Shown one piece after another: positions 1,833 through 50,239 of a stretch of DNA of 64,000 nucleotides. The stretch covers positions 1-64,000 of the forward strand of contig NW_026938926.1 of assembly GCF_032062105.1 (NCBI RefSeq). The letters are read 5' to 3'. This DNA comes from Saccostrea cucullata. Lineage: Eukaryota. Both the position numbers and the translations under genes were made by a program. Within the stretch, counting starts at the first letter, position 1; the number at the start of each line of letters is the position of its first letter. The notes under the pieces are model-generated. The model was not told the origin of the DNA and did not search any database. It saw nothing but the letters and a program-made list of their open reading frames with translations.

Positions 1833-3363
1833 GCCTTGTCTACAACAAAGTCTTGACTGTATCTGTCTATGTCATCTGTGTTTATTTGCCTGCTTGCTCC
1901 TCATTTTTGGAATAACTTGCAGGTAAAATAGATATTTATTTTTCCTAAGTAACAAACCAGTCATTAAACCAAAAGCATAAAATATTCTACTGATTGTATA
2001 AATAAATGTATTATAAACATTCATTATAAAGAAGAAGAAGGACACTAAGCTAATGATGAAATATTATTTTATCACCAATTCTTAGCAAGAAAATGTAAAC
2101 CAATAACAGTGTAGCTTATTACTTCTAGATGAGATTCTACATGTCCATGTCATTGATTTTTTTTTCACTTATAAAATTTTTCCATAATCGTGCAAACTTG
2201 TCTCATGTGGATTAAAATTATGAAATAGGTAAAGACTTCAAAATATTCAAGTTAAAAAATCAATTTCATTTTGTTTCCTATGTAGAATTATAAATATCAG
2301 AATGTAATCATTTCTCAAATAAGAGTAATAACGTACGTGATTTTAATGAAAAAAATTCAAATTATTATTTTCATACTTTGAGACAAGTTTAGGAGTGATC
2401 AACATCTTCAAAAAGAAAAGAAATATATAGATAAATTCAAATTAGTCTAGTTGAGTGCTGAAGAGAATACAATGTTAGAAGCTCACCAGAACCAAAGTCC
2501 ATTGTACCGTCCACTAATCACAAAAAATTACATGTTTAATATGTTGAAAGAAATAAAAGCAAGTTGGTTATTAAAAACCTACTGAATCGTAAGTGTGTCA
2601 TATGGAATTCAAAATTGTTTTTATGAAGATATATACAATCATTATTGTTTTCAATGGAGATGAAAGAACATAACAAAACTTGCATTTTAAAATCAATATT
2701 AATTTCAGAACCAAAATTCCTTTAAATAAAATGCTTATTAACTAGAGGTCTCATTCGGGATCATTTAATTGAATTTATTGCACTGTAGAAAAGAAAAAGA
2801 TGAAAATTATAATAAGAAACTTGTTACTTGATATTTCCAAATGATATTTTATTTCTTTTTATTTTTTAAGATGGTTTTCATAATGTGCTTAATATATATA
2901 AAACCAAGAAGGAAACAGAGAAAGCAGGGTTTAAGCAGAGAAGATACGTCTGGAGATCCACTTTATGGATCCTGTGAGGACCCTTGTTATAGTACATTAA
3001 CACTATCTAGTTAGCACCCGATGTAATCAAAACGGATCTTCTGAAGATTTGAATCCCTATGGCTATACGTATGAGGGAGGGAAATGTGGCTGGAGTACAA
3101 GGAACGAACGACAATAATATTTATTTGGTGGATAAAGAAAGTGTACGAATGCATATAATCTCAACTCAAGGACAGTATGAAGACCCGTGGAGAAACGATT
3201 GTGATAACTCCCTTCTGCGTCACTCTTCACAAGTAGGTTTGACCTTATGCCAGTAGATGAATCTAACAGTGCTTTACGGGAAAAGAATATGGACCGTACG
3301 AACTGGCATCTAGAAAGTAAATGTGAAAGTCTTGATCAGGAGAAGTAACACGAAGATCCTATA
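1833..3363 (+). pseudogene. 3' exons of a MEGF/ced-1-like membrane receptor paralog (gene A): hydrophobic TM-like exon and Tyr-motif cytoplasmic-tail exon, frameshifted
   Basis: The exon at ~1833-1922 ends ...FACLLLIFGITCR|gt. The terminal exon (ag|2871 to ~3363: EDPCYSTL, NPYGY, NSLLRHSSQ) is homologous to the exon at 31414-31893 that lies downstream of the EGF-type exons of gene B. Stops and frameshifts are present. Confidence 0.55.
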
Positions 3364-4618
3364 AACGATGACACATGTAGGTCGTCTTATTAGTATATTA
3401 ACATAAGTAAATATTAAGCAAATCAATGAGTGTCCTCTCAATAGAAATCTATAAAATGATTTTTTTTTAAGTGAAGTATCTGCCTCACAGCAAAATTTAT
3501 GATGTTCCACTCGTATTTGCATAACTCTAAGAATTAAACTTAAAGCTACTTATATGGTGTCGCCGTTTTGTAGGCGTTAAAAGTTGTTTGAGTGGGTATA
3601 AAGAAAAATGATTCCCAGGACCTATCATAAATTTACTTTCAGGTAGGTCTACTTCATGCTATCAGATATGCTATATTTTCCGGAAAATGCAGCATTACAC
3701 ATATTAAATATAAAAGTTTAAGAATCACGCAATTAATACAGTATATATGTACATGTATTTCATGTTTATATCTATTTCAGAAAACCATATTCCAGTTTGC
3801 TAAATATTCAGACAATGAATAGATTGGCTCATATGTTAAAAATTGTAAGGTGTCAACTACGATACATACATGTACATATTGAAGTCAGTATTCAGTCATT
3901 TATTTAGACCTATGTTAGGAAATATCAGTAAGAGGAAGAAAAAACTAAATATACTTCAGTTATTCAACTTCCCCATCTAGATTTTTATAGCTGATAAGTG
4001 TGTCTGGTGGCGCAAATGTTTTGATATATGATTTATTATATAACGAATAAAGTCAAGTAGAACACTCAACGTTTTTTTGTTATCAAAAAATTGATGATAT
4101 CAAATGCAAAAGCAAGATAACGCCTTTATTTAAACAAATGATAAATTATAAAATTCCAAAGATGTGTTTATAAAAGTGAAAGTCTTCAAACAATCTTTAT
4201 TTTAATTGTCTATTTTCATTGTTTCTTAAATTAATATTAAAAATGTGGTCATTTGATAAAGTCAATCCAAGGATATATCGACTTCAAAGAAAAGGATCGA
4301 CTTTGTCTCCAGTCTATATGCTCTGCTATAAAGTTTATACTGTAGAAGTCTTAAATTTCAAGTGTCTAAAATTTCACGGTTTGTTAGAAAGTTACCTTTC
4401 ACGGTAGTTTCAATTTCGCAGAGAATCATTCATAAATATTCAGGTGCTATGCCTGTTTTTAGGAAGATATGAAGTGAAGTAATAAAAACGATGGTTTAAA
4501 GTTCGCGGAAAATTCTTAAATCGTGAACATAGTGAAATTAAAATTTCCGTAATGTTTTTCACTTCTACAGTATGTAGATCTACCTCATAACAGAGAGGGA
4601 GAGAATGAGAAATAATAA

Positions 4619-5653
4619 TGAAAACAAGCCGTAGTTAATTATAACTTTGACTTGTAAAACTTAACACAAGCTTTACTGTATTAAACAGGTAGCTTGTTAA
4701 ACTCCTAAACACTTGATTAAAACGGGACACAAGTCGTGGTCATTTATAACACTGACTTGTTAAACCTACGCAAGCTTTACTGTATTAAACGGATTCAGCT
4801 TGTAAATACTACGGGCCAAATACGATAAGTCCGGTAATCTTTATTAAGTTAAAAGTAAAGTGAAATTAAATTCCGAAATTCTCTAATGAAAAATTCTATG
4901 AAAAATTCGAAAGAAAAATTTACGTATCTAGAAAAATAAAATTACTGAATCTAAACAAAATAAAAATTGACATTCGTTGAATTAATCAACTTTAGTCATC
5001 ATAAAAGAGAAAGATAGCAAACGTATAACTTTTGTTACGTAGTTTGCCGTAAAATAAAAATTAAATAAATGTAGAGTAAAATTGTAAAATAAAATAATCC
5101 TAGAAAAATAAATTAATGAAAAGAACTACTCAGTCATAGACTGTTAAGTTCTAAAAATTACCGATCACGGACAATAGTATTTTACTATTTAATGTCCTTC
5201 ACGGTTAAATCCTATCCTAACTAAATAAATGAAAAATTAAATAAATTCCTAATTTAAATAAAAGATAGACAAAAATAAAAGTTAAAATAAAATCCTAACA
5301 AAAATCTACAAGCTCCGTAATACGGACCTACCAAATCAAAATAAGCAGAAGAGTGACTAGAATTTCTCAGCGTCTAAATTTTATATGACTCAAAGACAGA
5401 AAATGACGGAAAAAGACGGAATTATTAATTATGAAATTTCATTGGATTAGTAACTAATGATCAATTATATTGAACAATCTGATTGGTCAATAGTAAAACA
5501 TCACGACCTTTCACGTGAACAAGTGTTACCAAACATTCTATACAAATGCAAAATAATAATTTCTCACATATTATCAATTAAAACAAAATATGTTTCACAA
5601 CAAATAATTTAAACAAAACATATTAAACTCAAAACAATATTTAGTTTGTAACA
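4619..5653 (-). mobile_element. Probable solo LTR
   Basis: On the minus strand it starts TGTTACA and ends TTTTCA, with CCAAT boxes, a TATA box and AATAAA in LTR order, plus a short internal duplication. The flanking 4-mers (TGAT/TTAT) are only an imperfect TSD. Confidence 0.5.
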
Positions 5654-6553: not shown

Positions 6554-6644
6554 CAGGTTGGGCACACCCCCCCCCATTTGGTTGATCCACTCCCGTTTAG
6601 TGGTCTATAGCCTAAATGGTATACATACATAACTGACCAAATGG
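6554..6644 (+). repeat. Left TIR (~90 bp) of the Academ-like element
   Basis: Imperfect reverse complement of 13735-13823; the outer ~50 bp are nearly identical. Confidence 0.92.
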
Positions 6645-6735
6645 TGGTCTTTTTTCTTCGCGCCAATATTGCATTAAATTAAGAGAAAGGCGCATTTGCA
6701 CGAGCATCAGGAGATGATCTCGAACTCACCCTTGG

Positions 6736-6812
6736 ACTTATATAAGGCGATTCGCCCAACATTTCATGCGGCAATTTCGATAGCGGAGGGAGAGAAAAGT
6801 ACGTAGAAGTAA
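6736..6812 (+). promoter_or_regulatory. Putative TATA promoter and non-coding first exon of the transposase gene
   Basis: TATATAA at ~6739, a GTAAGT donor at ~6809, and an acceptor tttag at 7126 just before the ATG at 7129. Confidence 0.45.
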
Positions 6813-7128
6813 GTAGTACTGTTATTTTGACAACTTAATGCTATATAATTTAAATATACCTCTTAAATGTTGAAAAATTTTCCTGTGAGCTCTTTCTACA
6901 ACTTTCATACTTTACAAATCAAAGCTTCTTATTGATCATGATCATTCAGAACCAATGAAAAGTCCCGTTATAATTAATTACAGCAGCTAAACGTTTGTAC
7001 GGCACATCATTAGAGTACAAAATACATAGATTTTTTTTCTTGGCCATTACAGTATAATGTATATATAGAGAGATTTTAATCAGAGAATTTTTACAAATAT
7101 TCTCTATTGTTGTATAATTTTTTTAGAT

Positions 7129-10100
7129 ATGCCATTTCCCAAGAAATGTAGCATTAAAACCCATGCAACAATTTGCAAGGACTCTGAACAAGGGACCCTT
7201 TTTAGAGTTAGGAAAAAAAGTGAGAAGTGAGCTTATTGAAAAATTAAAGCAAGAGGGGGAACTTAGCCCCAAAGGAACCTACATCTGTGAAAGATGTATT
7301 AAGCATGCTGAGGTAAATTATAAATTAATTTTCCATATTGTATCACTCACACAGGAATGAAAAGGGATAAAAGGAGAGGGGGGGGGGTATTGTTATTTTC
7401 AAATGATTTTCATCCATGCATATATAGTAAAATGTTACATGAAAACGAATTCATGTGAATTAAAAAACAAATTATATACATAAACATCCAGAAATTAAAA
7501 GATACGCCCTCCTTTGCTGTTTTCCTTAAACGATTTGTTTTGTTTGAAAAAAGACTACGACCATGCAATTTTCTCACAGGCAAGAATTGTCCCTAAAAGA
7601 AAAAAAAACACCATTGTTGCAGAGATGGTACAAAATATTGAGAATGGTGTCATCGAAGAAGATGAATTGGAGATGATTATGTGTGCAATTGGTTCGTTTA
7701 TTAATTTTTTTAATCATGTAAAAAAAAAAATGATTACGTTCAGGCACGTAGCATCGTTTTTGAAAGTGGGGGGGGGGGGGGGGGGCAACCTTAGAAAATT
7801 TTTTTACTTGCCGGTAGCCCCCCCCCCCCCCCAAAAAGAAGGAAAATTACTCAAACTCGAAAATCCTATTTCGTGTGTGTGTGTGGGGGGGGGGGGGGGG
7901 GGGTAGTGACCAAATTTTTTCAAGGCAAACTTCCTTTCACTGCCAATTTTTTCCTAAATTTACTTGCTATGTATATACTGTGGTAACAAGTGGGGGGCAA
8001 ACCACCTTTTCAATATACATTTTCTATATTAATCTATAGTAAAGGTAATGCTATCGGAAAAAATGGGGGGCAGCCCCCCCCCCCCCCCCCCGATACTACG
8101 TGCCTGACGTTTGGGTCGGCTGTACATCGTACCTTTCATTGAAATAATTACAGGGAAGGCATATTAATAAATTAATTGCATGAAGTCGCGCCATTTTTTT
8201 CTTTTTCACAGGAAGAAGAGAATCTTTAAAAGTTTTTGATGACAGTTTAGTTGCCGGTTCAATTTATAAAAAAGATGACATGTTAAAACATTTTGATCCA
8301 GCTCGTAAGATTTTTATGCATTTCTAATATTTTTTTTTTAAATTAAATTCATAAATAATATTAAAGTTTTCAAAAATAATTTTAATTAATTATTTTTTGG
8401 AACCTCTTCGTTTTATTTTCATAGGCTACATGTCTGAGAGGAATGGTCCTCTTCTTGCCTTTTTTAAAGGCTTGATGCAGGAGGGGGATTTTTATCAGAA
8501 GGAAAAAGCAGTAGTAATTAGCAGTGCAGTGGACAGCGTTTACTACCTGGTAAACACCAAATTCGTTGCTCCACTTGCATTTGCTAAATCCCTTCTTATA
8601 TACACTAAGACAGGTGGGTTTTTTTTATTATTAATTTTACAATCACGCAATTAAATATTTTCTTAATAAATTTTTAAACATTTTGTTATGATTTTATTAA
8701 ATAAAAAATATTTTTTTATATCCATCTGTATTTATAATTTATATTTATTTATTTACTAATATTGAATTGTTTATGTTATTAGGAAGCAAAGAAGGAGTAA
8801 ATGTTGCTAGTGCTGCATCACCAAGCGGAAGTTATACATCTATACTAAACTGGCTAAAAGCCAACAGCCAAGAGAAAATAAAGATCCCCGATAATTCGGA
8901 TGTTATATCTTTTTTTGATAACAACCAGGTCTTTAAAAATTTCTTTTACTTCAATTTAATTTTTTCAAATTATTTTTTTTTACACGTGTCATTATTTTTA
9001 TTGCGACTTTTAAATTTTATCTTTAAAAAGGTGATTGGTAGAAAATGGCGGGTCAAGAACGATTTCAAGGCGGAGTCATCCGTTATCACTTCTGTGGCTC
9101 ATATGCAGCCCAGAAGTGATATTCAGAGAAACATAGAGCTTGCGCCTTCAAAGTGGCAGAGTTTCCATGTACAGGCGAAGAAGGACTCTCTTGAAAAGTT
9201 GAAAGCGCAAGAAATATTATTTGAAAAAGAGTTCAGTAAATTAAGGTAAAAACTGAAGAGAGAGAGAGAGAGAGATTTTCAAAATTTACTCGTTTATAAT
9301 TTCAAACTTTTATTTCAGACATGGATTTATTTCTAAGAGAATCAATGAGATAAATCAAACAACAATCCGAAGAAGATGGATGGAAGGATCATGTTGACAA
9401 GAAAAAAGACCATCCACGGGAAATAGATCCCCCAAACGAGAGGTTAACGAGGATATATATTTGAAACACAATCGATTGTAAAAGAAATTATATTTTCAAT
9501 AAATGTTTTTATTATTATTATTCAGTTCACTTTCCAGGTGCGAATCCAGAATTTTTTTTCCACTCAAATAAAATACAACCCAGGAATTTCTTGACAAGCA
9601 AAAAAGAAAATAAAACTTAACTCGTTTAAACTTCAAAAACCCATTTCGAAGGGGGGTGGGACTTCTTATACTTAAAAAATTTGACCTTTCATACCAATTT
9701 AAGACAAATTTTCGTTAGCCATGGGGTCTGCGTTTTGCCGAGGGGGTCCATGGTATTTTTTCTTGCTTTAGTGTATAAATTTAATAACCTTGCCAATTCC
9801 TGGGGGGTCAGGTTCAGGGTTCATGCCTTCCATTTACCACCACCCCACCCATTCACCTCCAATCTACAAAATGTAAAACAGACTAAGATTGACACAAGTT
9901 ATATAAATCTAAAGATCAATTTCATTATTTTTAGATACACGTTCATTCCTAGCTGCCATGAAGCAGGGCCAAGCAAGGTTTTTGCTGGAGAACCCATTTT
10001 TGAGAACCCTTGTTCGTATGAGGCTGTAGAGAAGGTTGTATAGTATTCCTTAATTCATATAAATACAAAAAATAATAAATAAATAAATAAAAAAAAATTA

Positions 10101-12171
10101 TATGATGCATAAAATGTTCTATCTGGGAACAGGTGCTTGACCATCTCCTGGAGGAGGCAGAGGTCGGTACGACACGACATTGGACGGCAGTAGGATGTGA
10201 CGGCCTCCCCTACGTTCTCGCCTCGAGGATCATGGAGGAGTTGTATATTTGCCCTACTTGTCGTATCCAATATGACCAAGATGAGTTCATTAACCATATT
10301 GAGACTTCAAAACATGCGAATGATTTGGAGGAAGGAAGGAAATATAGGGATATTTTAATGCTAGCAGGTGTTACACTAATTTCAATTATAATGTGCAAAA
10401 ATCATCATCAATTTTGTTTAATAAAATCAAAATTTGTGCAAATTCTACATTTTTTTTAGGACATGGCCACTTTGAAATTAATATGACGAAGGCCCTTTTC
10501 AAACTCCTTTGGGACGTGTGCTTAATGGAGCTCGCAAAAATGCTGGGCTTCAAGAGTCCGAAGGCCCTTGCAGCATGCCAGGCTGCCCATGGTATAGAAT
10601 TTATAAACTAAAAAAATTTAAAATTGTATCATATTTTTTGTAAAAAAAAATACATAAATTAAAATGCTCCATAAGCGTCGGAATCAAATTGAAAGTGGGG
10701 TTTGGGGGCTAAACCAACAAAAAAAGTAAACCCTTATTTTCATGCCTATATTATGTATATATTTGTAAAAAAAAAAAAAAAAAAAAGGTGGGGAGAGGCT
10801 TAGCCCCCCCCCCCCCTCTTCCGACGCCTATGTGCTCTTCGCAAAACATAGATTTATTTTATATTGCAGATCACCATAAAAGCTGGCAAATTCTGGAAAT
10901 ATTCCTTTTTGCTATGTCTGGTGAGCTCCTTGTGCCCTATGTTCGTCAGGCATTGGAAAAAAAAGAAACGCCTTCCGTTGAAGGGTTTTTAGCCAGCAAC
11001 AAGACCCCTAATGCAGCTTTGATGGCGAAGATTGTTTTTGACCACAGTCTAGCACTTCATGTGTTTAGAGCAGGGGTACGACGCAACAACACAGAGGTCA
11101 TTCTTTGTAGCAGGTCTAAATTTTCCCCATTATTTTTTGGCTTAAACATGCCATTTTACATGGAGGCTTTCGTCAGAGACTCTTTAATTCGGATACAGTG
11201 TCCTCCTGCAGTCAACGAATTTATGAGAAAAAACGAGACGTACACTGTAACTGGGAACGAGAGCAAAGGCGAAGGGGGGGACTTTGTTCTGGAGAACCTC
11301 AACCGCAAAAGCAAAAGCTTCATGCCCCCCGGCCTGCCAACCGACGAGAAATGGCTCACCATAAGCAGAAACATCGACAAATTAGACGAGGTAAAAAATA
11401 TTTATATACACATCATGCACATAAATCGTAATGACGTAGGATTGTTTTAGAAGGGGGCAGATGCAGAGAACAAAATTAAAAGGGAGGGGGTGCCCTAACT
11501 CAGAAATCTTTTTTCTAATGTACATTTTCTATAACAAAAGGTTATGTATCATGGAAAAAAAGTATCCCCCCATTCAACATGCATAAATCCATTGCATCTA
11601 AGATTAAATGAATTTATTTAGAAACAGTTTAAATATACTTTATACTGTATATAGTAATTTTGTTCATATTTTTCAGATCAGACTGAACATGCAGACAATT
11701 ATGGGGCTGACAGATAAAGACTCAGAATATACATACGCATACGACATTAGTGAAGAAATCTCAGCATTTAGACACATAATTAGGGAACGTAAATATTTAC
11801 AAAAACAATCACTCACTACACTCTCAAATAAACCTTTAGACAGTGCATTCTTACATTTTGCAGAACATGCACAAGAAAACAAAGACTCGCATTACACACA
11901 CATACAAACACACGCACTCTCATCTAGACTTAAACACACACCTATATTTATTTTTCAAGAACACAGAGAAAAGCACACCAACATCGCAAACAAAACAAAA
12001 GCTGAAATATCTACACACATTGAGACACAGTTGGACACATTGAAATCACATACACTAAGCCAGAAATGGAAAAAAGTGAAAAACTTGAAAAAATCTGTTC
12101 TTTTAGAATTTCTTAAAGAACTAAATGAAATTAAGGATGCTGAAAGCCAGAGCGAGTCAGATGTAGAATAA
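7129..12171 (+). CDS. Academ-superfamily-like DDE transposase, 12 coding exons, roughly 850 aa, a few frameshifts in this copy
   Basis: Approximate GT-AG exons: 7129-7312, 7580-7691, 8212-8304, 8425-8613, 8783-8928, 9031-9245, 9319-9442, 9935-10033, 10133-10367, 10460-10591, 10869-11390, 11677-12171. Motifs in order: ISFFDNNQ (D1), EPIFENPCS, AVGCDGLPY (D2), CPTC-x11-H-x5-H, GHGHFEINM, FRAGVRRNN...PLFFG...Y, GDFVLENLNRKSK (E). This matches the Academ pattern D..D..GxxH..RxxN..DxxxExxNxxxK. Confidence 0.8.
7741..8106. mobile_element. MITE (366 bp) in transposase intron 2, left arm only
   Basis: 16-bp TIRs CAGGCACGTAGCATCG / CGATACTACGTGCCTG. TSD ACGTT at 7736-7740 and 8107-8111. Empty site with a single ACGTT at ~54345 in the right arm. 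Confidence 0.92.
10670..10832. mobile_element. MITE in transposase intron 10
   Basis: TIRs CATAAGCGTCGGAA / TTCCGACGCCTATG and 5-bp TSD TGCTC. Same family as 63609-63961; mirrored at ~51556-51711. Confidence 0.85.
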
Positions 12172-12235
12172 AGGTATGAATATCTATAATTTTTGCAAAT
12201 TACTCGCTTGAGAAAAAAAATTAATTAGCAAGCAT

Positions 12236-13307
12236 TTATTTCTTAACACCTAAATGTTTAGGACAAAAAAATTTTAAATTTTTCAGAGCATTTTTTCGGA
12301 AGGCAGTAACCCCCATGCACCAGGCATGCCTCCAGAAGGAGCAATCCTTTACTTCACAACCCACCCACAGCTTGCTCTCCGATAGAGACTCTCCACAGAT
12401 CCGACAGCAAGACTCGTCAGCCGAATCTCCTCCGAAGGTTGATTCTGTCGTTTGGGTGCTGGCCTCTTTAAAAGTTGGCGATGAAGCCGATGTAAGATGT
12501 GCAGAAGACGTAGAGGGAGAAGATGGCAAAGTAGGCGATGCAGGGGCAGATGGAGAAGCAGAGGATGACGCACAGGACATTGATGTTTCAATAGTCGCGA
12601 CCTTGTGTACATAATTATGTTATATTATTATTAATTTGCATTGTTGTACATGTATATAAATTTAATATTTATTTAAATCAAATGTATAGATGACAGAGTT
12701 TTTCACAGTTGTACCTTTTTGAAATTTGGACTGGAATATTCATACACTATTCCTGAAGCAGGTGCCCTCATTGTCAGTGAAACCTCTGCTGAAGTTGCTG
12801 TATATATATCTTGAACCTGTGCCATGTTAAAAATCTTTTAAAACTATGACACCTTTTAAGAATGTACATATTTGTTTTTTAATGATATGATTTTTTAAAC
12901 TTTGATATAACTCTTTAAAAACTTTGAATGCATGTTCATAAATATATGCTTTTTTTTGTTTTTTGTTTGTTTGTTTGTTTGTTTTTTTTTTACATTTTCA
13001 ATGATTTTTATGATTCCATTACCATGATTATTAAAGAGTTATTAATCAAAATTTCGGTGCGTTTTTTTAATTAGGCGGTTAGTAACAAAGCTGGAATTAA
13101 AACAAAAAGTGTTTCTGATCGTGTAATTATGTAATATAAGATGTCTTGAACATGCTTTTGAATGAATACACACCTTTTCAAGAAGTGTATCCTTTCGTTT
13201 GTTGAAGGAGCGTATCATCTTTTTCTGGTCTGTTAATATTTTGGTGGGGTCCTTCTTTTTTTAATTTGTCTTAAAATGGTTACTTTGCCACCTCTTGTAG
13301 TTTTTTT
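12236..13307 (-). CDS. Transposon accessory gene: MADS-box-like domain, Ser/Pro-rich linker, PHD finger (3 exons)
   Basis: Exons 13307-13174, 12816-12715 and 12601-12236 have GT-AG ends and phase-0 joins. Product: KKTTRGGKVTILRQIK...MIRSFNKRKDTLLEK|VQDIYTATSAEVSLTMRAPASGIVYEYSSPNFKK|VATIETSMSC...CCRICGESLSESKLWVGCEVKDCSFWRHAWCMGV...FFCPKH. This copy has a 1-nt deletion in the A-run at ~13256-13262. The start codon is not resolved. Confidence 0.8.
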
Positions 13308-13397
13308 CTACACAATATGAAAAAAATGAATAGAGAATGCATTTATTGAAAATTTACACAAACGGCGCTCCGTATTAAAGTTTGAGCTTTCGACCGA

Positions 13398-13428
13398 AGT
13401 TTATATAGATCAAGAGATTTGATTGGCT
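13398..13428 (-). promoter_or_regulatory. Putative CCAAT and TATA promoter of the MADS-PHD gene
   Basis: Minus-strand AGCCAAT is followed ~20 bp later by CTATATAAAC, ~95 bp upstream of the first coding exon, firing inward from the right end of the element. Confidence 0.5.
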
Positions 13429-13734
13429 ACAATTGTTTTGAAGTAACCCGGATAATTGGAATCGAAAGTAGAATGTTTGGAGAAGGGGCTCCTCATGTGA
13501 ATTTTGAAGCATTTGGATTAATTGTAAGGTAATATTATGCAAAAATAATGGCCATAATCAGGATTTTACTTAGCATACCTGAAATTTGCACACCCAGGCG
13601 CACAAATTTCCACATGCAATGTTCCATTTTTTTATGTTTAAAGACACGAGGAACCTAAATTACTTACCACTCCTGTCATCTTAGTGCGCCGAGTTAAAAA
13701 GCAGGTGTAAATCGAAAAACACGAAAAGTAACTC

Positions 13735-13823
13735 CCATTTGGTCAGTTAACAATGTATACGATTTGGTTGATTGACCACCAAACGGGAGTGGATCAACCA
13801 AATGGGGGCGTGTGCCCAACCTG
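13735..13823 (-). repeat. Right TIR (~90 bp) of the Academ-like element
   Basis: Ends ...GTGCCCAACCTG and is followed by the CTAGT TSD. Confidence 0.92.
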
Positions 13824-14679
13824 CTAGTGGCAAACCTGACATGCATGGTTTTATGTATATGATGATCATGATGATGATGGTGATGATGACGATGAGGATG
13901 ATGATCGATGATACGGAGACGATCACTACATTGGGAAACGTTTGGCATTAATTCAAAAATTGAGACATTGATTGATAACTGAGATATATACCCGGGGTAG
14001 ATGTGTCGTTGATTGTTAATTGGTTACCAAGATAATTGTTTTTTTTTGGTTAACTTTTTAATAGTGAGCAAGGGGTGTGGATCAGAGTGCGGTAGATGGT
14101 GTGAGGTTTTTGCTATTATTATTATTTTTTTTTGTAAATAAATTTATTAAACTTATTGAACTTGTGTGATTCTTGGAGAAAGCCAGCTTGACCACGTGAC
14201 ATAATTCATCTCAAAATACATTCATTCGTAACCATTTATACTGAATAAATTTATCGACTATACAATCAATAGGAGAACAATTTATCGAATAGATTAACAC
14301 GTTTCTAAACCGGAAGTACATCGTATAGAAGAGTTCCAAAACTGTCAAACATGTGCCAAAAGAAGTTTAGACTGTTTACAGGTACCAAATCAATTAAGTA
14401 ACACTAAACAAACAACAATCACATACTTTTACGCACAGTAATAAGTTGCTATATATACGTAAGTTATAATCTACAAATGACCCACTTTACAAATCTCCTG
14501 TCAAACTCTAATTCAGTTCGAATTATCTCTGTCATGTTTACATTGCCAACATACTATGATACTACAATTTACTCTTGATTTCAAGTATTTATAAATACAA
14601 TTACATAACTTAGGTACAACTTTGCGAACAGCACATTCATAGTAAAACAAAATAAAACTTCTTGAATAAACAAACTTCA

Positions 14680-14923
14680 TCAACCCGCTCCAAATCACTA
14701 TAAAGCATGATAGCATATTACAGACATTGACTCTATTTGATAGAAAAATCAACCCGCTCCAAGCTCACACAATTACAGTAAAGTATTACAGTCATTGACT
14801 CAGCATGAATAAACACTATATTGTGGATTAAATAATCAACCCGCTCCAAGCTCACACAATTACAGTAAAATATTACAGTCATTGACTCAGCATGAATAAA
14901 CACTATATTGTGGATTAAATAAT
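14680..14923. repeat. Short tandem duplication (88-bp unit x2 plus a diverged partial unit)
   Basis: CAACCCGCTCCAA at 14681, 14750 and 14838; the last two units are nearly identical. Mirrored at ~47490-47731. Confidence 0.85.
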
Positions 14924-15635
14924 GAATGTCATATACCCTAACTACATGACATAAAAATTAAAAGGGGGGGGGGGGGTCACATACACTACAATTGGATAAT
15001 TTTATAAACCACATCTATTAAAAATCTTTTGTACAAATGATATCCATGAGTTTTTCATTTCTCTTTATCATGTTGTTTATGTAAATACATATATACTATT
15101 CTAGACAATTTTGTTTTCTTTTTCATTCACAAGTTTTGCCCAATATTTTTATCATTCTTGAGTAAATATTTATGTGTAATGGAAACCTTCCCAGTTTCTT
15201 TATAAATCATATAACTTGGGAGTGCTACTTTTCAAATTCATATATGTTTTAAATAATTAAAATGTACTCGTTCAATAATATCGATATGTGACTCGCCATG
15301 AGATTTTTGGCCCAAATGCGGCAAAACGTAATAATGAAAAAAACGTCACAATCAACGTTTACAAAAAAGCGTGAATTTCGCGCACTTGTTAAAATAATTG
15401 CAGGATGAATTTAAATTGTGTAATGTTTAAAGACTTTTTTATATAAACAAAAATAATAAGAAAATCGATCTTATTTTGATTTAAGTATTATTGAAAGTTT
15501 TCGAGGGAAAAAAATCGAGATTATTTAGAGTTATTCCCCGTAAGACTAACTCTTCTTTAGTTTCCGAGTTGTTGGTGTAAACAATCATGGCGTCTCGAGA
15601 AATGAGGGAGATTTAAACTGAATAGAATCGCCGGA

Positions 15636-18600
15636 ATGGAAAGCTGCAGCCAACTAAGCCAGTCAAGTGCAGTTTCTAATGCAAGTACAATCCCCCCGGA
15701 AATAGTAGAAAACGAAGATGAAGAATTTGTAAACGAAATAAATCGAGTGAATGACCTATATTTGGAACTTGTCAAACACATCGGATGTCGACCCGGAATA
15801 TCACTCTGATAACGCAGAGAGCTCTGACGAAAATGAAAGCGATGGAGAAATAGGAGATCGAGAAAATTTAGTACCAATAAGAGCAGAGTGAGGTAGATAG
15901 AATGAAATTGACCAATTTCAAAAGTTTAATTCTAAAACATGCGGTTGTTCTCGACTCTACGGAAAACCATGTAGTGAGGTCGTCGATTTAGAATCTTTGC
16001 TTGAATACAGAAACACGTGCCTGGAAATGAACAAGGAGGAACTAGATATGATGATCAAAGTGCAATTATTTCACCATCGGCGAAATGACAAAGTTACTAG
16101 TGCAAAGAAACATAGATCAAAAGAAAGGGAGAGAATCAGACAAGAATATTTTTTTAATGGACATCAAGTGTGTAGAGAAACATTTGCGTTTTGCCATGGA
16201 GTTTATAGGAAGACGGTGGACGCGCTTGCTCGTTCCCTTGATAAGGATGGACTCGCTCCTAGAATTCATGGAAACATTGGTAAACATCCAAAGCATGCCC
16301 TCACTGTAAATGATGTTCAATCTGTAAAAGATTTTCTAACATCTTATGGAAACAAGTTAGGTTTACCGTTACCAGGAAGACTGCCAAACTAAAGAGATAG
16401 TAGAGCTAAAGTGTTGCACTCTGATAAGACCAAGGCTGATATACATCAGGACTATTTGTTAGCTGCAGAGAGTCTACATTTGAGAAAGATATGTTTGTCA
16501 GAATTTAAAAGAGTTTGGCTGAATATATGTCCACATGTTCTAATTAGCAAGCCTTCAACAGACCTATGTTATAAATGCCAATCCTATGCGAATATCCTGG
16601 TTCATGGTGGCATGATGACAGAAGAGGAAAAGGAGCAACATCTTGAGAAATACACAGCTCATGTTGAAAAATCAAAGATGCAGAGGGATTATTACAGAAG
16701 GCAATGTGAAGTTTCTAAAACTAGCTTTTCTGCTCTTCCAAATGAGAGAAAAACCAGAGGTAACAATTTATTATATGATTCAAGTAATATTGTTTGAAAT
16801 TAGTTAATCATTTATGCATTAGTTCTGTTAAATTAGTGATTTTTCTTAATCAATTGGCTATTGATATTTTCCCTAGGTCAGCCCATCTGTTCTTTGGAGG
16901 GAACTCAACATTACAGTTTTGATTATGCCCAGCAAATACATTATCCACATTATGCGCAACAGGTTGGTCCTTTGTTCTTCAAAACCCCACGGAAATGCCA
17001 GTGTTTTGGAATCGGTTCAGAGGGTTCAGGTAATTTTTTAGAACGTCAAACACAAGACTACAATAGTCTAATTGATTTTTTAGCATTACTCTTTTAGTTC
17101 AATGATAGAAAATAAAATTTATAGATTCATGTACAAGTTTACTACTACTAGTCTAACAAATTTAATTTATAAAACAGACTAGGCAGTGCATTTAATTGGC
17201 TAATACATGCAACCTGTAAATTTAGAATTATATTTTAGAAATGCACCTTTTCATAAAAAAAAATTGAAGTAAAAGAATAATTAACTTTTTCAGTGCAAAC
17301 ATTTTTTTGTGAACTTTTATCCAGGATCACAGATATTTTACTTGATTGATGAGTCTCAGCATTCTGGAAAGGGGGCCAACTCTGTTGCCAGTATGATTCA
17401 CCACCATTTTCAACATAAAGGTTATGGAGAAATGAATTTACAACTCCATATGGACAACTGCACTGGTCAAAATAAAAACAACACTGTTATTGGGTATGTA
17501 TTTCCAATCCAACTGTCTATATTTTAACTACCATTTGTGTGGATGGTATTTTTGCAAAATTAATACAATAGGTGTCTTCATGTCAAATACATCCATGTTT
17601 ACATGTGGTACATGTAATGAAATACACTGGCAAAATTATTTTCAATTCATTTGTTCTCTTTGATTAGTTTAGTTCTGATAATGAAGTTCTTTAGAAGTGC
17701 ATTTAGAGATCTTGTCTCTTTTGAATTTTATTTTAAAAGAATGTCTTGTAGATATGGGATGTGGCGAGTTATGACCGGCAGACATATGACCATTGAGTTT
17801 TCTCTGATGGAGGCAGGCCACACAAAGTTTCATCCCGACTGGCATTTTGGGCTCTGGAAGGTGAAATGGCGAGGAACAACTGCAGAGAATCTTGAGGAAG
17901 TGGCCAAATCCGTTGCTCATTCATCTAGGAATAACCATAAATTCCCCACTTGATAGGATCCCCAGTATCCAGTCATTTTCTATGACTGGAGCACGTTTCT
18001 CAAGCAGTACTTCAAGCCAATACCTCAACTCAAGCAGTATCATCATTTTCGGTATGCATTATATTGCCTGTGTTTTTTAGCAATTAATTTATTGGAGGTT
18101 GAGTTATCACAGAACAACAAATGCACAGAGAGGCATAGATAAGATCTTCAAGTATACTGTAGACATACTTTTTTCCACGCTGTCATAATTCTGTGGAATC
18201 TTGATTTTTGTTTAATCTGCAGGTAGAAAATCATGTGGATTTCTTAACTGTCCCTATATATACCTTACATGTTTATTAAGTATGCTTGGACAAATTTCCG
18301 TGAAAAATTTGTGACCGCGTACATACCGTAAATTAATACCATACGAAAAAAGTACTTCTATGGTATTATATTTTTTTTTCATTTTATCTAATTTGGTCTG
18401 AATTTCATGACTTTAGTAAAACCAGCAAATTTCAGACCAAAACATCAAAATTAATTTAGTATTTTTCTTTATACCTGATCATCTTATTAAATATATATAT
18501 TTGGTGTTTGTTTGTCATATATTCTTTTATTTTCTTATGCTTGTATAATTTATCCCTCAATTAAAAATCTTTATGTTGTCAAATTAAAAAAAATTACATG

Positions 18601-19217
18601 AACATGTATACAAAAAAAAAAAAAAATCCCCAAAAGCAAACACCAAATACATCAGATTTAAGCCCATGTTGACAAATGCAAATTTTAAGTATAAGCATGA
18701 TAAGGTTATGAATTCTGTTAGCATTGAATTTTGAAAATTTTTGTATACATGTATGCTGCTAAAAACAGAACTGAAAAGAAATTCTTAACTAATTCTAACT
18801 GCCATGACTGTGCTCCTTCAATATCTTTTGCATTAAGCTGTCGATAAATATATTTTAAAAAAAACAATATATGTTGGAAGATCTAACATCTTTGACTTTT
18901 GCAGCATGACACATGAACATCCTGGAGTAGTCCATCTACGAAAGTATGCTGGAGATGAAGAAATTACTGTCAACATCCTGAAACACAAAGATTTCAGGTT
19001 TCCAAACATGGATGCCTCTCTTCCAACTGTTATTAAAGCATGTGGCCTTGACGCACAGCGACAGTGGTATTTATACGACGAGGTGGCCCCATACTGTGCC
19101 AGTCATGAGGCATGTCCCCGCCCAAGTGTACCAAAACCATCAGCCATAAAAGTTGAACAGAAAGTGAAATTAGGAAAGAGAAAATGTGCAAATGAACATT
19201 GTAACAAATCAATGTAA
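15636..19217 (+). pseudogene. Sola transposase, 5 exons, disrupted in this copy
   Basis: Approximate exons 15636-16759, 16877-17029, 17325-17493, 17752-18051, 18905-19217. Motifs HYSFDYAQQ, DNCTGQNKN and GHTKFHPD. Frameshifts near 15765, 15880 and 17945 and a stop at 16390, relative to the right-arm copy. Confidence 0.85.
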
Positions 19218-19399
19218 TTTACATGCTGTCATGGATGTTAAGAGTTTGATTTTATCTAGTTCTTAAAACTGTTATATTCTGTTGTATTAATTTGATCAAA
19301 CAATATGTGTTTCAGAATGAAATGACATCTATTTCAAATTGTGTTACTTCATTGCTTTTATGTAACTTTAAAGTCGCAGAAATCACCAATATCAGATAA

Positions 19400-19809
19400 A
19401 GCAAGATGTGTTCATGAAACACTATGTACCCAGTGGTCCCTAAGTTTGAAAAAACTATTTTTAGTATATAGGTCACAATCAAGGTGACAAGGTCATTAAC
19501 CTTGGTGTCATTTGAAAAAACTTAATTTAGTGGAGTACGCATAGAAAGTATGAAGTTTCTATCTCGTATTGTTAAAGATGTATTGCAAAGGTTAAAAAAG
19601 ACTATTTTTAGCAAATACAAGTAGGTCACAGTCAAGGTCACAAGGTCATTGGCCTTGGTGTCATTTGAAAGAGCTTGGTTACTGGAATATGCATACCAAA
19701 TATGAGGTTTCTATCTCTCATGGTTCAAAAGTTATGGCAAAGGTTAACATTTAAAGATAGACAGGACAAAAACAGTATGCGCTCCTGATCTACCGATCCG
19801 GGCGCATAA
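19400..19809. mobile_element. Small Helentron/HINE-like non-autonomous element inside the Sola 3' region
   Basis: Two ~150-bp units containing ggtcacaaggtcattgaccttggtgtcatttgaaa and a terminal hairpin-like gatc...gatc. Related sequence lies at ~33890-34125; mirrored at ~42603-43012. Confidence 0.5.
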
Positions 19810-20598
19810 CAACCAATTAGTAAAGTCCAATTTTCTTGACAATGAATAGGGATATCAAAGAAAAAACAACAGATAGTTGTTACTGGGGGTCATCTCTACT
19901 AGATAGTATAAAAATCTCATTTTCTCTCAGGTACCTCATTTGGGCCAAAATTCTCATGGCTTGTCATATTTTCATAACCCTATTTTTCACAGCCATATAA
20001 CAATACTGGTAAAACTACTTTATCAAACAAATTCAATTGACATTCGAAGGGGAGATTATATGCTTAATTTTACTATCACACCATACATCGCCTTTGGTGC
20101 TTGTTCGCTTAGGTGTTTTCTTGCTTTACACAACTAGCCTGTACGAGAAAATAAAATCCTCAAATAATTCAAATCCTTGACTACTTCTATGACACTGTAT
20201 CTTGTTTCTTTATATTCACACATAATTTTCATTTTTCACAATATTTGCAAAATTCATTTAATGCTCTCTAAAGATCTTCAGCAGTTTCCTCAAGAATTAC
20301 AGTATCATCGGCATAAAATAAAACAAACAGTTTCATTTTGAAGCCAAAACGCATTGCAGCTCGTTTCAGTTTTTTTTTCTTTTCATTTCGACATTTCCTT
20401 TGTTCAATACAGCATATTAAAACAATGTTTTTATTTTGTTTTATAAAAAACAATGACATCATTTTATGTTCAACTTAAGATTAGAAAATGTAAAATTTTG
20501 CATTCTAAAATATTGATCGATTAGACGCTTTTTAGGTGCTTTTTAATGTGTTTGTCTTTTTCCATTCTAACAATATACACTTTAAAACGTGACGTTTA

Positions 20599-21376
20599 AA
20601 CCTCAGTCACATTTCCAAAAACGACTAACGGCCGACGGGTTTTGAAGCAAAAATGGCAGTCGTCAGTTCATCGGCCGTTGTCTTGGCCGATTTTGACCTA
20701 TTTTTTTGTCGGCCGACCAATATCGTGTCCATCGGTCCAAGTTATAATTTTTCATGCGTCGGTGGCCGATTTCTTCAAGTGCAGTTATCCGTCGACCAAA
20801 CTTCGATCATCGTCCAACCATCGGCTGTCAGTTTATTAAGTCGGTCGTCCGTCGTTGGACAATAAAGGTGTTGAAAATTTCGACCGACGGTTAAAATCAA
20901 ACTGTAGCTCAGAGCTCGATGATTGTGAATATTTAACCTATTAATGATACATAACACAAACAAAATTTTGATGCATGGATTGATATAATTTTTTTGAAAG
21001 GAAATAACATAAATAATTAATCCGTAAGATATAGAGAAAAATCTTAAGCAGTCTTTGCTGCTTAGATATGCACCATTTGTCGTTTTTATGCAATTCCATA
21101 CAAATTTTGCATTGAGTCACAATTTTATAAGTTTCTGCCACTTTGCCTTGCTAACATAACTCACGTCACCTATCTGAATATAGATCTGTGAAAAATATTG
21201 CTGATTTCTAAAGAAAAAAAAGTTTTTGTGTTATTTATCCAAGTCATCCCTGTTCCTAGGAAATAATGTGACTGCTCCGTGTCGCCCGATACTGTGTCGG
21301 CCGATCCTGTTCTTTCAGCTGACAAGACCAGAAAAATTTAAGTCGCGCGACCATCGGCTTAAATGTGACCTAGGCA
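20599..21376. mobile_element. PIF/Harbinger-like non-autonomous element
   Basis: Imperfect TIRs (CCTCAGTCACATTT / AAATGTGACCTAGG), TTA on both flanks, and repeated CGGCCGA/TCGG subterminal motifs. Confidence 0.55.
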
Positions 21377-21552: not shown

Positions 21553-21589
<37 letters not shown>

Positions 21590-22706
21590 TGACCAAACTT
21601 GGTACGAAGCATCCTTGGTTGAAGGGGATTTTAAATTGTGAAAATGAAGGGCCAAGTCCCCTCACAAGGGGAGATAATCAAGAAAAGACAAAAATAGGGT
21701 GGGGTCATTAAAAAATCTTCTTCTCAAGAACCACTGGGCCAATAAAGCTGAAACTTATGTGGAAGCATCCTGGGGTAGTGTAGATTTTAAATCGTTCAAA
21801 CCATGACCCCCGGGGGTTGGGCGGGGCCACAATGGGGAATCAAAGTTTTACATAGAAATATATAGGAAAAATCTTTAAAAATCTTCTTCTCAAGAACCAC
21901 TGGGCCAGAAAAGCTGAAACTTATATGGAAGCACCCTGGGTAGTGTTAGGTTCTAAATTGTACAAATCATGACCCCCGGGGATAGGGCGGGGCCACAATG
22001 GGGAATCAAAGTTTTACATAGAAATATATAGGAAAAATCTTTAAAAATCTTCTTCTCAAGAACCACTGGTCCAGAAAAGCTGAAACTTATGTAGAAGCAC
22101 CCTGGGGTAGTGTAGATTGTAAATTGTTCAAATCATGACCCCCGGGGGAAGGGCGGGGCCACAATGGGGAATCATAGAAATATATAAGAAAAAATCTTTG
22201 AAAATCTTCTTGTCAAGAACCACTGGGCCAGGAAAGATGAAACTCATGTGGAATCATCCTCAGGTAGTGTAGATTCAAGTTTGTTCAAATCATGACCCCC
22301 GGGGGTAGGGCGGGGCCACAATGGGAAATCAAAGTACTACATAGAAATATATAGGGAAAAATCTTTGAAAATCCTCTTCTCATGAATCACTGGGCCAGAA
22401 AAACTGAAACTTATGTTGAAGCACCCTGGGATAGTGTAGATTGTAAATTTTTCAAATCATGACCACCGGGGGTAGGGTGGGGTCACAATGGGGAATCAAA
22501 GTTTTATATAGAAATATATAAGAAAAATCTTTTAAAATCTTCTTCTCAAAAACCACTGGGCCAGAAAAGCTGAAACTTATGTGGAAGCTTCCTGGGGTAG
22601 TGTAGATATCAAATTGTTTAAATTATTATCATTGTGGTAGGGTGGGGTCACAATATGTATTACAAGGGGGAAATCTGGTTAAAAAAAAAAACAGAATGGT
22701 CAAAGA

Positions 22707-40796: not shown

Positions 40797-40833
<37 letters not shown>

Positions 40834-47127: not shown

Positions 47128-49101
47128 ATATCGATATTATTGAACGAGTACATTTTAATTATTTAAAACATATGTTGAATTTGAAAAGTAGCACTCCAAG
47201 TTATATGATTAATGAAGAAACTGGACGGTTTCCATTACACATAAATATTTACTCAAGAATGATAAAATATTAGGCAAAACTTTTGAATGAAAAAGAAAAC
47301 AAATTGTCTAGAATAGTATATATGTATTTACATAAACAACATGATAAAGAGGAAATGAAAAACTCATGGATATCATTTGTACAAAAGATTTTTAATAGAT
47401 GTGGTTTATAAAATTATCCAATTGTAGTGTATGTGACCCCCCCCCCCCTTTTAATTTTTATGTCATGTAGTTAGGGTATATGACATTCATTATTTAATCC
47501 GCAATATAGTGTTTATTCATGCTGAGTCAATGACTGTAATATTTTACTGTAATTGTGTGAGCTTGGAGCGGGTTGATTATTTAATCCACAATATAGTGTT
47601 TATTCATGCTGAGTCAATGACTGTAATACTTTACTGTAATTGTGTGAGCTTGGAGCGGGTTGATTTTTCTATCAAATAGAGTCAATGTCTGTAATATGCT
47701 ATCATGCTTTATAGTGATTTGGAGCGGGTTGATGAAGTTTGTTTATTCAAGAAGTTTTATTTTGTTTTACTATGAATGTGCTGTTCGCAAAGTTGTACCT
47801 AAGTTATGTAATTGTATTTATAAATACTTGAAATCAAGAGTAAATTGTAGTATCATAGTATGTTGGCAATGTAAACATGACAGAGATAATTCGAACTGAA
47901 TTAGAGTTTGACAGGAGATTTGTAAAGTGGGTCATTTGTAGATTATAACTTACGTATATATAGCAACTTATTACTGTGCGTAAAAGTATGTGATTGTTGT
48001 TTATTTAGTGTTACTTAATTAATTTGATACCTGTAAACAGTCTAAACTTCGTTTGGCACATGTTTGACAGTTTTGGAACTCTTCTGTACGATGTACTTCC
48101 GGTTTAAGAAAAACGTGTTAATCTATTCGATAAATTGTTCTCCTATTGATTGTATAGTCGATAAATTTATTGAGTATAAATGGTTACGAATGAATGTATT
48201 TTGAGATGAATTATGTCACGTGGTCAAGCTGGCTTTCTCCAAGAATCACAAAAGTTCAATAAATTTGATAAATTTATTTACAAAACGAATAATAATAATA
48301 ACAAAAACCTCACACCATCTACCACACTCTGATCCACACCCCGTACTCACTATTAAACAGTTAATAAAAAAAAAACAATTATCTTGGTAACCAATTAACA
48401 ATCAACCAATCTACCCCGGGTATATATCTCAGTTATCAATCAATGTTTCAATTATTGAATTAATGCCAAACGTTTTCCAACGTAGTGATCGTCTCCGTAT
48501 CATCGATCATCATCCACATCGTCATCATAACCATCATCATGATCATCATATACATAAAACCATGCATGTCAGGTTTGCCACTAGCAGGTTGGGCACACAC
48601 CCCCATTTGGTTGATCCACTCCCGTTTGGTGGTCAATCAACCAAATCGTATACATTGTTAACTGACCAAATGGGAGTTACTTTTCGTGTTTTTCGATTTA
48701 CACCTGCTTTTTAACTCGGCGCACTAAGATGACAGGAGTGGTAAGTAATTTAGGTTCCCTCGTGTCTTTAAACATAAAAATATGGAACATTGCATGTGGA
48801 AATTTGTGCGCCTGGGTGTGCAAATTTCAGGTATGCTAAGTAAAATCCTGATTATGGCCATTATTTTTGCATAATATTACCTTACAATTAATCCAAATGC
48901 TTCAAAATTCACATGAGGAGCCCCTTCTCCAAACATTCTACTTTCGATTCCAATTATCCGGGTTACTTCAAAACAATTGTAGCCAATGAAATCTCTTGAT
49001 CTATATAAACTTCGGTCGAAAGCTCAAACTTTAATACGGAGCGTCGTTTGTGTAAATTTTCAATAAATGCATTCTCTATTCATTTTTTTCATATTGTGTA
49101 G

Positions 49102-50175
49102 AAAAAAACTACAAGAGGTGGCAAAGTAACCATTTTAAGACAAATTAAAAAGAAGAAGGACCCCACCAAAGTCTTAACAGACCAGAAAAAGATGATACGC
49201 TCCTTCAACAAACGAAAGGATACACTTCTTGAAAAGGTGTGTATTCATTCAAAAGCATGTTCAAGACATCTTATATTACATAATTACACGATCAGAAACA
49301 CTTGTTTTAATTCCAGCTTTGTTACTAACCGCCTAATTAAAAAAACGCACCGAAATTTTGATTAATAACTCTTTAATAATCATGGTAATGGAATCATAAA
49401 AATCATTGAAAATGTAAAAAAAAAACAAACAAACAAACAAACAAAAAACAAAAAAAAGCATATATTTATGAACATGCATTCAAAGTTTTTAAAGAGTTAT
49501 ATCAAATTTTTAAAAAAAATATCATTAAAGTAACAAATATGTACATTCTTAAAGATGTCATAGTTTTAAAAGATTTTTAACATGGCACAGGTTCAAGATA
49601 TATATACAGCAACTTCAGCACAGGTTTCACTCACAGTGAGGGCACCTGCTTCAGGAATTGTGTATGAATATTCCAGTCCAAATTTCAAAAAGGTACAAAT
49701 GTGAAAAACCCTGTCATCTATCCGTTTAATTTAAGTAAATCTTAAATTTATATACATGTACAATAAAAAATACAAATTAATAATAATATAACATAATTAT
49801 GTACACAAGGTCCCGACTATTGAAACTTCAATGTCCTGTGCGTCACCCTCTGCTTCTTCATCTGCCCCTGCATCACCTACTTTGCCATCTTCTCCCTCTA
49901 CTTCTTCTGCACATCCTACATCGGCTTCATCGCCCACTTTCAAAGAGGTCAGCACCCAAACGACAGAATCAACCCTCGGAGGAGATTCGGCTGACGAGTC
50001 TTGCTGTCGGATCTGTGGAGAATCTCTATCGGAGAGCAAGCTGTGGGTGGGTTGTGAAGTAAAGGATTGCTCTTTCTGGAGGCATGCCTGGTGCATGGGG
50101 GTTACTGCGTTCCGAAAAAATGCTCTGAAAAATTAAAAAAATTTTTGTCCTAAACATTTAGGTGTAAAGAAATAA
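49102..50175 (+). CDS. MADS-box-like plus PHD finger gene (mirror copy)
   Basis: Exons 49102-49236 (45 codons, open), 49591-49692 (34 codons) and 49810-50175, all joined in phase 0. In-frame TAA at 50134-50136 lies just before the last PHD ligands (TTA in the left copy). Confidence 0.8.
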
Positions 50176-50239
50176 ATGCTCGGTAGTTAATTTTTTTTTT
50201 CAAGCGAGTAATTTGCAAAAATTATGAATATTCATACCT

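Follow-up and report, generated by a model that had tools for sequence, protein, structure and literature searches.

A divergent MADS-box core joined to a PHD finger in a probable transposon gene of Saccostrea cucullata

A stretch of 64,000 nucleotides from the genome of Saccostrea cucullata (contig NW_026938926.1, positions 1 to 64,000; hereafter the window) carries a small coding gene of at least three exons, herein called the MADS-PHD gene. Its predicted protein of about 170-200 residues consists of a MADS-box core, a serine-rich linker, and a C-terminal PHD finger. We estimate a probability of about 0.8 that the locus represents the small, accessory gene in a DNA transposon of about 7.3 kb, bounded by terminal inverted repeats (TIRs), and that its MADS core is of a divergent SRF/MCM1 type. 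Since the region as a whole is duplicated in inverted orientation, the gene occurs in two copies, here called copy A and copy B (Table 1). A first-pass annotation, made by a model from the letters of the window, had proposed a MADS-box-like domain at 12715-13307, spliced from two exons, fused to a PHD finger, and borne by a transposon.

Results

A natural relative ties the exons together

The closest full-length member of the family is P0113, a 188-residue protein of Crassostrea virginica, which was found in a second search with the open reading frame (ORF) of the PHD exon. Its source name is 'PHD finger protein ALFIN-LIKE 4-like', and its SRF-TF domain is precomputed there. We compared the exons of the window with P0113 by BLASTP. 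First, residues 16-45 of exon 1 (copy B) matched P0113 13-42 with 60% identity (E=4e-8). In addition, residues 1-34 of exon 2 in both copies matched P0113 43-75 with 74-76% identity (76% for copy A; E=5e-16). Finally, residues 35-120 of the PHD exon of copy A matched P0113 106-188 with 66% identity (E=2e-43). The three exons thus tile P0113. The relative has the same text contiguous across the junction of exons 1 and 2, with exon 1 ending exactly at residue 42 and exon 2 starting at residue 43, and it therefore confirms the phase-0 splice of the first-pass annotation. By tblastn, P0113 matched only the copy A and copy B loci in the window.

The block of P0113 that corresponds to the two exons is MADS-like by several measures, as the first-pass annotation had held. 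Pfam SRF-TF scored 29.9 bits against a cut-off of 26 bits (E=3.8e-7) over residues 31-68, which correspond to profile positions 11-48 and comprise the last twelve residues of exon 1 and the first 26 of exon 2. A plain phmmer search of P0113 against the PDB returned SRF (E=0.006), MCM1 (E=0.012), and MEF2A (E=0.014), the alignment with SRF being ungapped. We also built a profile, A2, of eleven full-length members of the family other than the window proteins and P0113. The alignment of A2 with P0113 by hhalign spanned both domains with a probability of 99.4% (E=3.5e-21). In an unguided MAFFT alignment, exons 1 and 2 fell end to end over the MADS block of the family.

The AlphaFold2 model of P0113, built from a 15-row alignment, has a long helix (residues 20-50) followed by a two-stranded antiparallel sheet (55-59 and 65-69), which is the MADS core fold, at a pLDDT of about 90. 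The pLDDT of the PHD domain is about 88-92, whereas the linker came out as disordered; the mean over the whole model is 69.6. Foldseek of this model against the PDB returned MADS chains of MEF2 and SRF (probability 0.99-1.0, E 0.08-0.14) and H3K4me-reading PHD fingers; no match was at E<=0.001, and those to MADS chains are weak.

A family of MADS plus PHD proteins

The family was found by phmmer, with the PHD exon of copy A as the query against 1.84 billion representative proteins. Of the 97 matches at E<=0.001, the majority are small proteins that carry the PHD finger C-terminally, and the longer members have an N-terminal block that Pfam calls SRF-TF. The SRF-TF score was above the cut-off in Acanthaster planci (P0027, 44.3 bits, E=1.2e-11), Asterias amurensis (P0112, 39.4 bits), Patiria miniata (P0111, 37.7 bits), and Mercenaria mercenaria (P0021, 27.9 bits), and below it in Mizuhopecten yessoensis (P0011, 23.9 bits) and another protein of Patiria miniata (P0054, 21.3 bits). 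All of these, and P0113, also have a C-terminal PHD finger. When 101 relatives were scanned (E<=0.01), PHD was found in 79 and SRF-TF in 7; most of the others are PHD-exon fragments. An iterative profile placed the N-terminal block in 20 of 110 proteins, with E-values that are indicative only, the database being tiny. Related genes thus occur in oysters, clams, scallops, and starfish. Some of the members are automatically tagged 'MADS-box domain-containing protein' in the databases, and others are misnamed 'ALFIN-LIKE 4-like' or 'BPTF-like'.

Against the PDB, the A2 profile matched SRF (7e-9), MCM1 (3e-8), MEF2 (3e-4), and SEPALLATA3 (3e-3), and its C-terminal part matched the PHD fingers of KDM7, SIZ1, TAF3, and BPTF. 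These matches indicate that the family has a MADS plus PHD architecture and is closer to SRF/MCM1 than to MEF2.

Two side observations concern the relatives. The Tegillarca granosa protein P0016 (KAJ8309743.1) is chimeric, combining a TNF domain (65.6 bits in Pfam) with a stretch that resembles exon 1 and a truncated PHD finger, after which comes an antisense translation of the large gene described below; this gene model probably runs through a transposon copy. The distant members P0040, P0084, P0085, and P0039 end in a basic R-T-R-G-G-like tail, and exon 1 starts with a similar T-R-G-G, a likeness that may be due to chance or to a moved motif. An hhalign alignment of the family with exon 1 to this C-terminal TRGG tail was rejected as spurious.

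Residue-level features of the two domains

Detectable homology to MADS begins at an RSFNKRK stretch, and the KRK of the helix is retained in both the window and P0113. A phase-0 intron interrupts the MADS core. For the first 15 residues of exon 1 there is no counterpart in P0113 and a weak one only in P0016, whose identity over the full length of the exon is 37% (E=0.019, from a tiny database).

The fusion to a PHD finger was borne out by Pfam PHD (PF00628), which scored 24.8 bits on the copy-A exon against a cut-off of 24; the portion of the copy-B exon that precedes its stop scored 19.3 bits. Copy A has all eight zinc ligands in the PHD order, at columns that are nearly invariant across the 101 relatives, and the tryptophan before the third cysteine is retained. 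The last ligand pair is C-x2-H instead of C-x2-C.

Structure of the small gene in copies A and B

The coding sense at 12715-13307 is the minus strand. The peptide quoted for this interval by the first-pass annotation holds in part. Exon 2 there agrees with the quoted text in its E and M variants. Exon 1 has no single open frame: translation of 13307-13173 meets two stops, the quoted text of 45 codons is spread over two frames, and one quoted residue differs (I in place of V). Compared with copy B, exon 1 of copy A thus has one frameshift. The first two exons of copy B, at 49102-49236 and 49591-49692 on the plus strand, translate exactly as quoted. The quoted peptide is therefore exact only in the mirror copy because the window is an inverted duplication, and the alternatives (E/Q) and (M/V) given with it are differences between the mirror copies.

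The introns are GT...AG in both copies, and every junction is in phase 0 as read in copy B. The PHD exon is open in copy A (ORF 12236-12580), whereas that of copy B contains a single in-frame stop. Exon 1 is immediately preceded by a stop, and the gene therefore begins either in an upstream exon or at an internal Met. Copy A is open throughout if translation begins at the internal Met of exon 1. The two copies differ by just 2-6% in the exons.

Table 1. Positions of the MADS-PHD gene, the large gene, and the transposon copies in the window
Feature	Position	Strand	Description
Element copy A	6554..13823		about 7.3 kb; TIR-bounded; holds the large gene (+) and the small gene (-), tail to tail
Left TIR of element copy A	6554..6656	+	starts CAGGTTGGG; inverted CCATTTGG / CCAAATGG pair 63 bp apart
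Large multi-exon gene	8701..12171	+	convergent with the small gene; six ORF pieces; C2H2-type zinc finger
MADS-PHD gene copy A	12236..13307	-	exons 13307-13174, 12816-12715, 12598-12236 (stop codon included in the last)
Right TIR of element copy A	13723..13823	-	82% complementary to the left TIR over 92 nt; outermost 20 nt 95%
Element copy B	48585..55533		mirror of copy A in the other palindrome arm; same flanks
MADS-PHD gene copy B	49102..50175	+	exons 49102-49236, 49591-49692, 49810-50175

The gene lies within a TIR element

The claim that the domain is transposon-borne was upheld by three features, namely TIRs of about 100 bp, identical 5-bp flanks, and a pairing with a large gene that recurs at a second locus and in the Tegillarca model. 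The window contains the 14-nt TIR terminus four times, where 0.02 occurrences would be expected. At the single insertion available for comparison, an identical 5-bp CTAGT abuts both ends of the element on the outside. Since CTAG is palindromic, CTAGT may equally be read as a target-site duplication of 5 bp or as part of a longer TIR that ends in CACTAG. The flanks of copy B are the same as those of copy A, indicating one insertion that was duplicated with the palindrome arm.

The element ends are rich in short motifs. Each TIR holds an inverted pair of the kind listed in Table 1, with degenerate copies in between, and pairs of a CC(A/T)4GG motif are present in every TIR. Octamers of the CCAAATGG type number 11 in the window against 2.9 expected, and 8 of the 11 are within the four TIRs. 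These motif pairs are candidate binding sites, offered as a lead only. As a separate observation, long G and C homopolymer runs form short inverted repeats at 7771-8096, upstream of the conserved exons of the large gene.

The large gene is a putative transposase and may have extra 5' exons between 7069 and 8700. A search with the oyster subfamily recovered one extra locus, the metagenome contig L001, in which the PHD exon is followed, on the opposite strand, by the six large-gene pieces, all of them collinear and with 48-79% protein identity. The L001 gene pair is 73-75% identical in DNA to the window element. In Tegillarca, the model P0016 extends from the PHD exon across sequence antisense to the large gene. 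The gene pair is thus repeated as a unit in the window, L001, and P0016, as judged by gene content at the latter two loci. As a side observation, the expected place of the MADS exons in L001, upstream of the PHD exon, is taken by an unrelated pair of minus-strand ORFs (125 and 62 aa, at 257-834) rich in coiled-coil-like sequence, which probably represents a rearranged copy or a further insertion.

The window is a large inverted duplication

The window has zero N in its 64,000 nt. One arm of the palindrome, 1-26131, pairs with 62115-36294 at about 95-96% identity, so that each arm is about 26 kb and the spacer between them about 10 kb. The palindrome may reflect a genuine inverted duplication, or else the assembly may have folded two haplotypes together. 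Identity between the arms is patchy, being 91.7-95.7% within the MADS-PHD element (bins 7001-13000) and 98-100% nearby (3001-5000 and 13001-21000). A single duplication followed by uniform decay does not account for this pattern; patchy gene conversion or a haplotype mosaic would explain it.

Several neighbours of the element were also recorded. A second transposase-like gene in several ORF pieces lies at 15997-19217 (+), with its mirror at about 43200-46500 (-) and 99-100% identity between the arms. One piece resembles Pfam DUF7869 weakly, at E=1.8e-4 and with 21.6 bits, which is short of the cut-off of 26. A satellite with units of about 166 bp, several copies per arm and 63-91% alike, occupies 21561-22647 and 39742-40814. 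A 27-bp minisatellite of at least 8 units is situated in the central spacer (34628-34889), and a tandem pair of 87-bp units lies just outside the element (14739-14912, mirrored at 47486-47659).

Discussion

Weighing the assignment

Given that the tiling of P0113, the family profiles, and the TIRs point to a transposon gene with a MADS core and a PHD finger, we gathered the observations that weigh against this reading and set them beside the alternatives on which they bear.

The first set concerns the state of the two copies. Under the long gene model there is one defect per copy, and the exons are no better conserved than the introns between copies A and B. An explanation to which we give an even chance is that both copies are dead relics, the frame being the residual signal of a decayed element with no expression from the locus. 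The frameshift in the long model of copy A, the in-frame stop in copy B, and the like divergence of exons and introns agree with it; however, copy A is fully open from the internal Met of exon 1, and an exon divergence of 2-6% is too small for judging constraint. With one defect each and a divergence without sign of constraint, copies A and B are probably decaying members of the family, with intact ones elsewhere. Since the relic explanation concerns copies A and B alone, the family assignment is untouched.

The second set concerns the MADS core. The Pfam match in P0113 is limited to profile positions 11-48, and the canonical N-terminal arm (positions 1-10) is therefore not detectable. The first-pass annotation had read an SRF-like KKTRG arm followed by an insertion of about 10 residues. 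This remains unproven, since homology starts at the RSFNKRK stretch and the ungapped alignment of P0113 with SRF needs no such insertion. In addition, a column in which the family has a near-invariant arginine (R65 of P0027) has I in P0113 and M in the window. No canonical CC(A/T)6GG site (CArG box) was found inside the element. One may suppose that the MADS-like core no longer binds DNA and remains as a dimerisation or protein-contact module on a chromatin-reading PHD finger. This is in keeping with the match of P0113 to only positions 11-48 of the 48 in the profile, with the replaced arginine of the oyster subfamily, and with an N-terminal stretch of which the window, P0113, and P0016 share just a few residues. 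We consider such a loss unlikely, although by no means negligible, given that the basic KRK of the helix is well kept, as are the residues of the strands, and that the helix is modelled at high confidence.

The third set concerns the element. The ORF pieces of the large gene matched no Pfam or PDB family, the best being zf-Di19 (E=0.004) and DUF6589 (E=0.088), and neither DDE_Tnp_4 nor Transposase_21 was matched in Pfam. L001 is degenerate, and the approximately 1.1 kb that precede its PHD exon contain no MADS exons. The MADS-PHD genes might instead be a host family, that is, ordinary cellular regulators of lophotrochozoans and echinoderms that are situated next to a mobile element or were picked up by one. 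The proteins of three starfish genera are consistent with this, as they are 70-72% identical, are each annotated as a single locus (with several isoforms in Acanthaster), and all score above the SRF-TF cut-off at 37-44 bits. We regard a host family as improbable for the window gene, which sits within TIRs and whose tail-to-tail pairing with the same large gene is also found in L001 and Tegillarca; moreover, many relatives are short, degenerate, or without zinc ligands, like decaying repeats. For the starfish genes a host family is plausible, and the two views can be compatible, with a gene that is mobile in bivalves and domesticated in starfish.

The last set concerns the exons searched singly. 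The spliced model was searched exon by exon, each exon being its own query. Exon 1 (29 or 45 aa) and exon 2 (34-36 aa) alone matched no Pfam family at E<=10, and against the PDB they returned ribosomal-protein noise or nothing. A protein-homologue search with exon 1 gave no candidate, owing to its length window of 25-79 aa. Searched separately, neither of the window's own exons reached the gathering score of SRF-TF (PF00319); the pieces are short, and the domain is split by the intron. The N-terminal profile of the family was also compared with every one of the 2877 stop-to-stop pieces in the window; those of exon 2 came 2nd and 7th, with E-values of 1.4 and 4.4, and exon 1 was not recovered. 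The hhalign comparison of the family with the single exon 2 found the correct position at P=0.027. Since the exons alone are without significance, the MADS assignment of the window exons rests on homology to P0113, itself a predicted gene model. A chance resemblance of non-coding exons, which the failure of either exon alone to match Pfam or PDB might suggest, is refuted by the matches to P0113 at E=5e-16 (exon 2) and E=4e-8 (exon 1) and by the junction at exactly 42|43.

A possible role of the protein

If the gene is the accessory gene of the transposon, its protein could serve as a dimeric DNA-binding adaptor for the element. The MADS core would bind repeated motifs in the ends or promoter of the element, and the PHD finger, being of the type that reads the H3 tail, would bind chromatin. 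Such an adaptor would couple the transposase or the transcription of the element to the chromatin state. We rate this role as doubtful, the mechanism being wholly inferred; it would be analogous to that of the second, DNA-binding ORFs of other two-gene transposons and to the PHD of RAG2.

Comparison with known systems

SRF and MCM1, the SRF-type MADS-box proteins (PF00319), are the best PDB matches of A2 and of P0113 alone. They have a basic helix followed by two strands, and the F-x-KRK stretch and the strand pattern are common to the family. The MADS-PHD protein differs in having a serine-rich linker and a PHD finger in place of the SAM-type C-terminal extension. The oyster subfamily further departs from SRF/MCM1 in the undetectable N-terminal arm and the replaced arginine, and the MADS-PHD gene lies within a transposon, its domain interrupted by a phase-0 intron. 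MEF2 has the same core fold (Foldseek 6wc5_A, rmsd 2.1 A over 49 columns), but the sequence match is weaker than that to SRF/MCM1, and the MADS-PHD protein is without a MEF2 domain after the core.

The C-terminal domain has its top Foldseek and PDB matches among H3K4me-reading PHD fingers (Alfin-like, ING, BPTF, TAF3, Pygo), with which it shares the eight zinc ligands and the tryptophan. It is unlike them in the C-x2-H final pair, and histone reading is here predicted from sequence and model.

Two-gene DNA transposons with a second ORF that binds DNA include PIF/Harbinger, with a Myb-like protein, and En/Spm, with TNPA. Like these, the window element has a small gene of a DNA-binding type beside a large gene in one TIR element, with repeated short motifs in the ends. 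In PIF/Harbinger the fold of the second ORF is Myb, whereas here it is MADS and the binding is predicted. A resemblance to CACTA-type elements lies in the possible CACTAG terminus and an H-x-E-x-N stretch, and we do not claim this affiliation.

RAG2 and the RAG2-like protein of ProtoRAG provide an analogy for an accessory protein that ends in a PHD finger. Both systems have two convergent genes inside TIRs with 5-bp flanking repeats, and Pfam RAG2_PHD matched weakly in the window (E=0.04; best 2.3e-5 among the relatives). We considered a RAG/Transib-like element and rejected it, as the large gene matched neither RAG1 nor Transib in Pfam or the PDB, the partner has a MADS core and no Kelch propeller, and the termini are not heptamer-like.

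Significance for animal MADS genes

On the established view, SRF and MEF2 are the two MADS-box lineages of animals. Recent eukaryote-wide surveys of MADS genes likewise treat only these two where animals are concerned (PMC10484287, PMC13281830). In the literature library covered by our full-text searches, neither a MADS-PHD family of animals nor a transposon-borne MADS domain is described. The MADS plus PHD architecture in bivalves and echinoderms is a further animal MADS group, which in bivalves lies inside a transposon.

We tentatively propose, while holding the odds to be somewhat against it, a third and mobile animal MADS lineage in which an SRF-type core is joined to a histone-reading PHD finger. 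It would be the accessory gene of unclassified bivalve transposons, would tie the element ends to a chromatin mark, and would possibly have been domesticated in starfish. If this is true, MADS would join the DNA-binding domains of transcription factors that are spread by transposons. If the family is truly mobile, it would show a transposon disseminating a MADS DNA-binding domain, might supply hosts with new regulators, and would offer a new kind of two-gene transposon with a chromatin-reading accessory protein.

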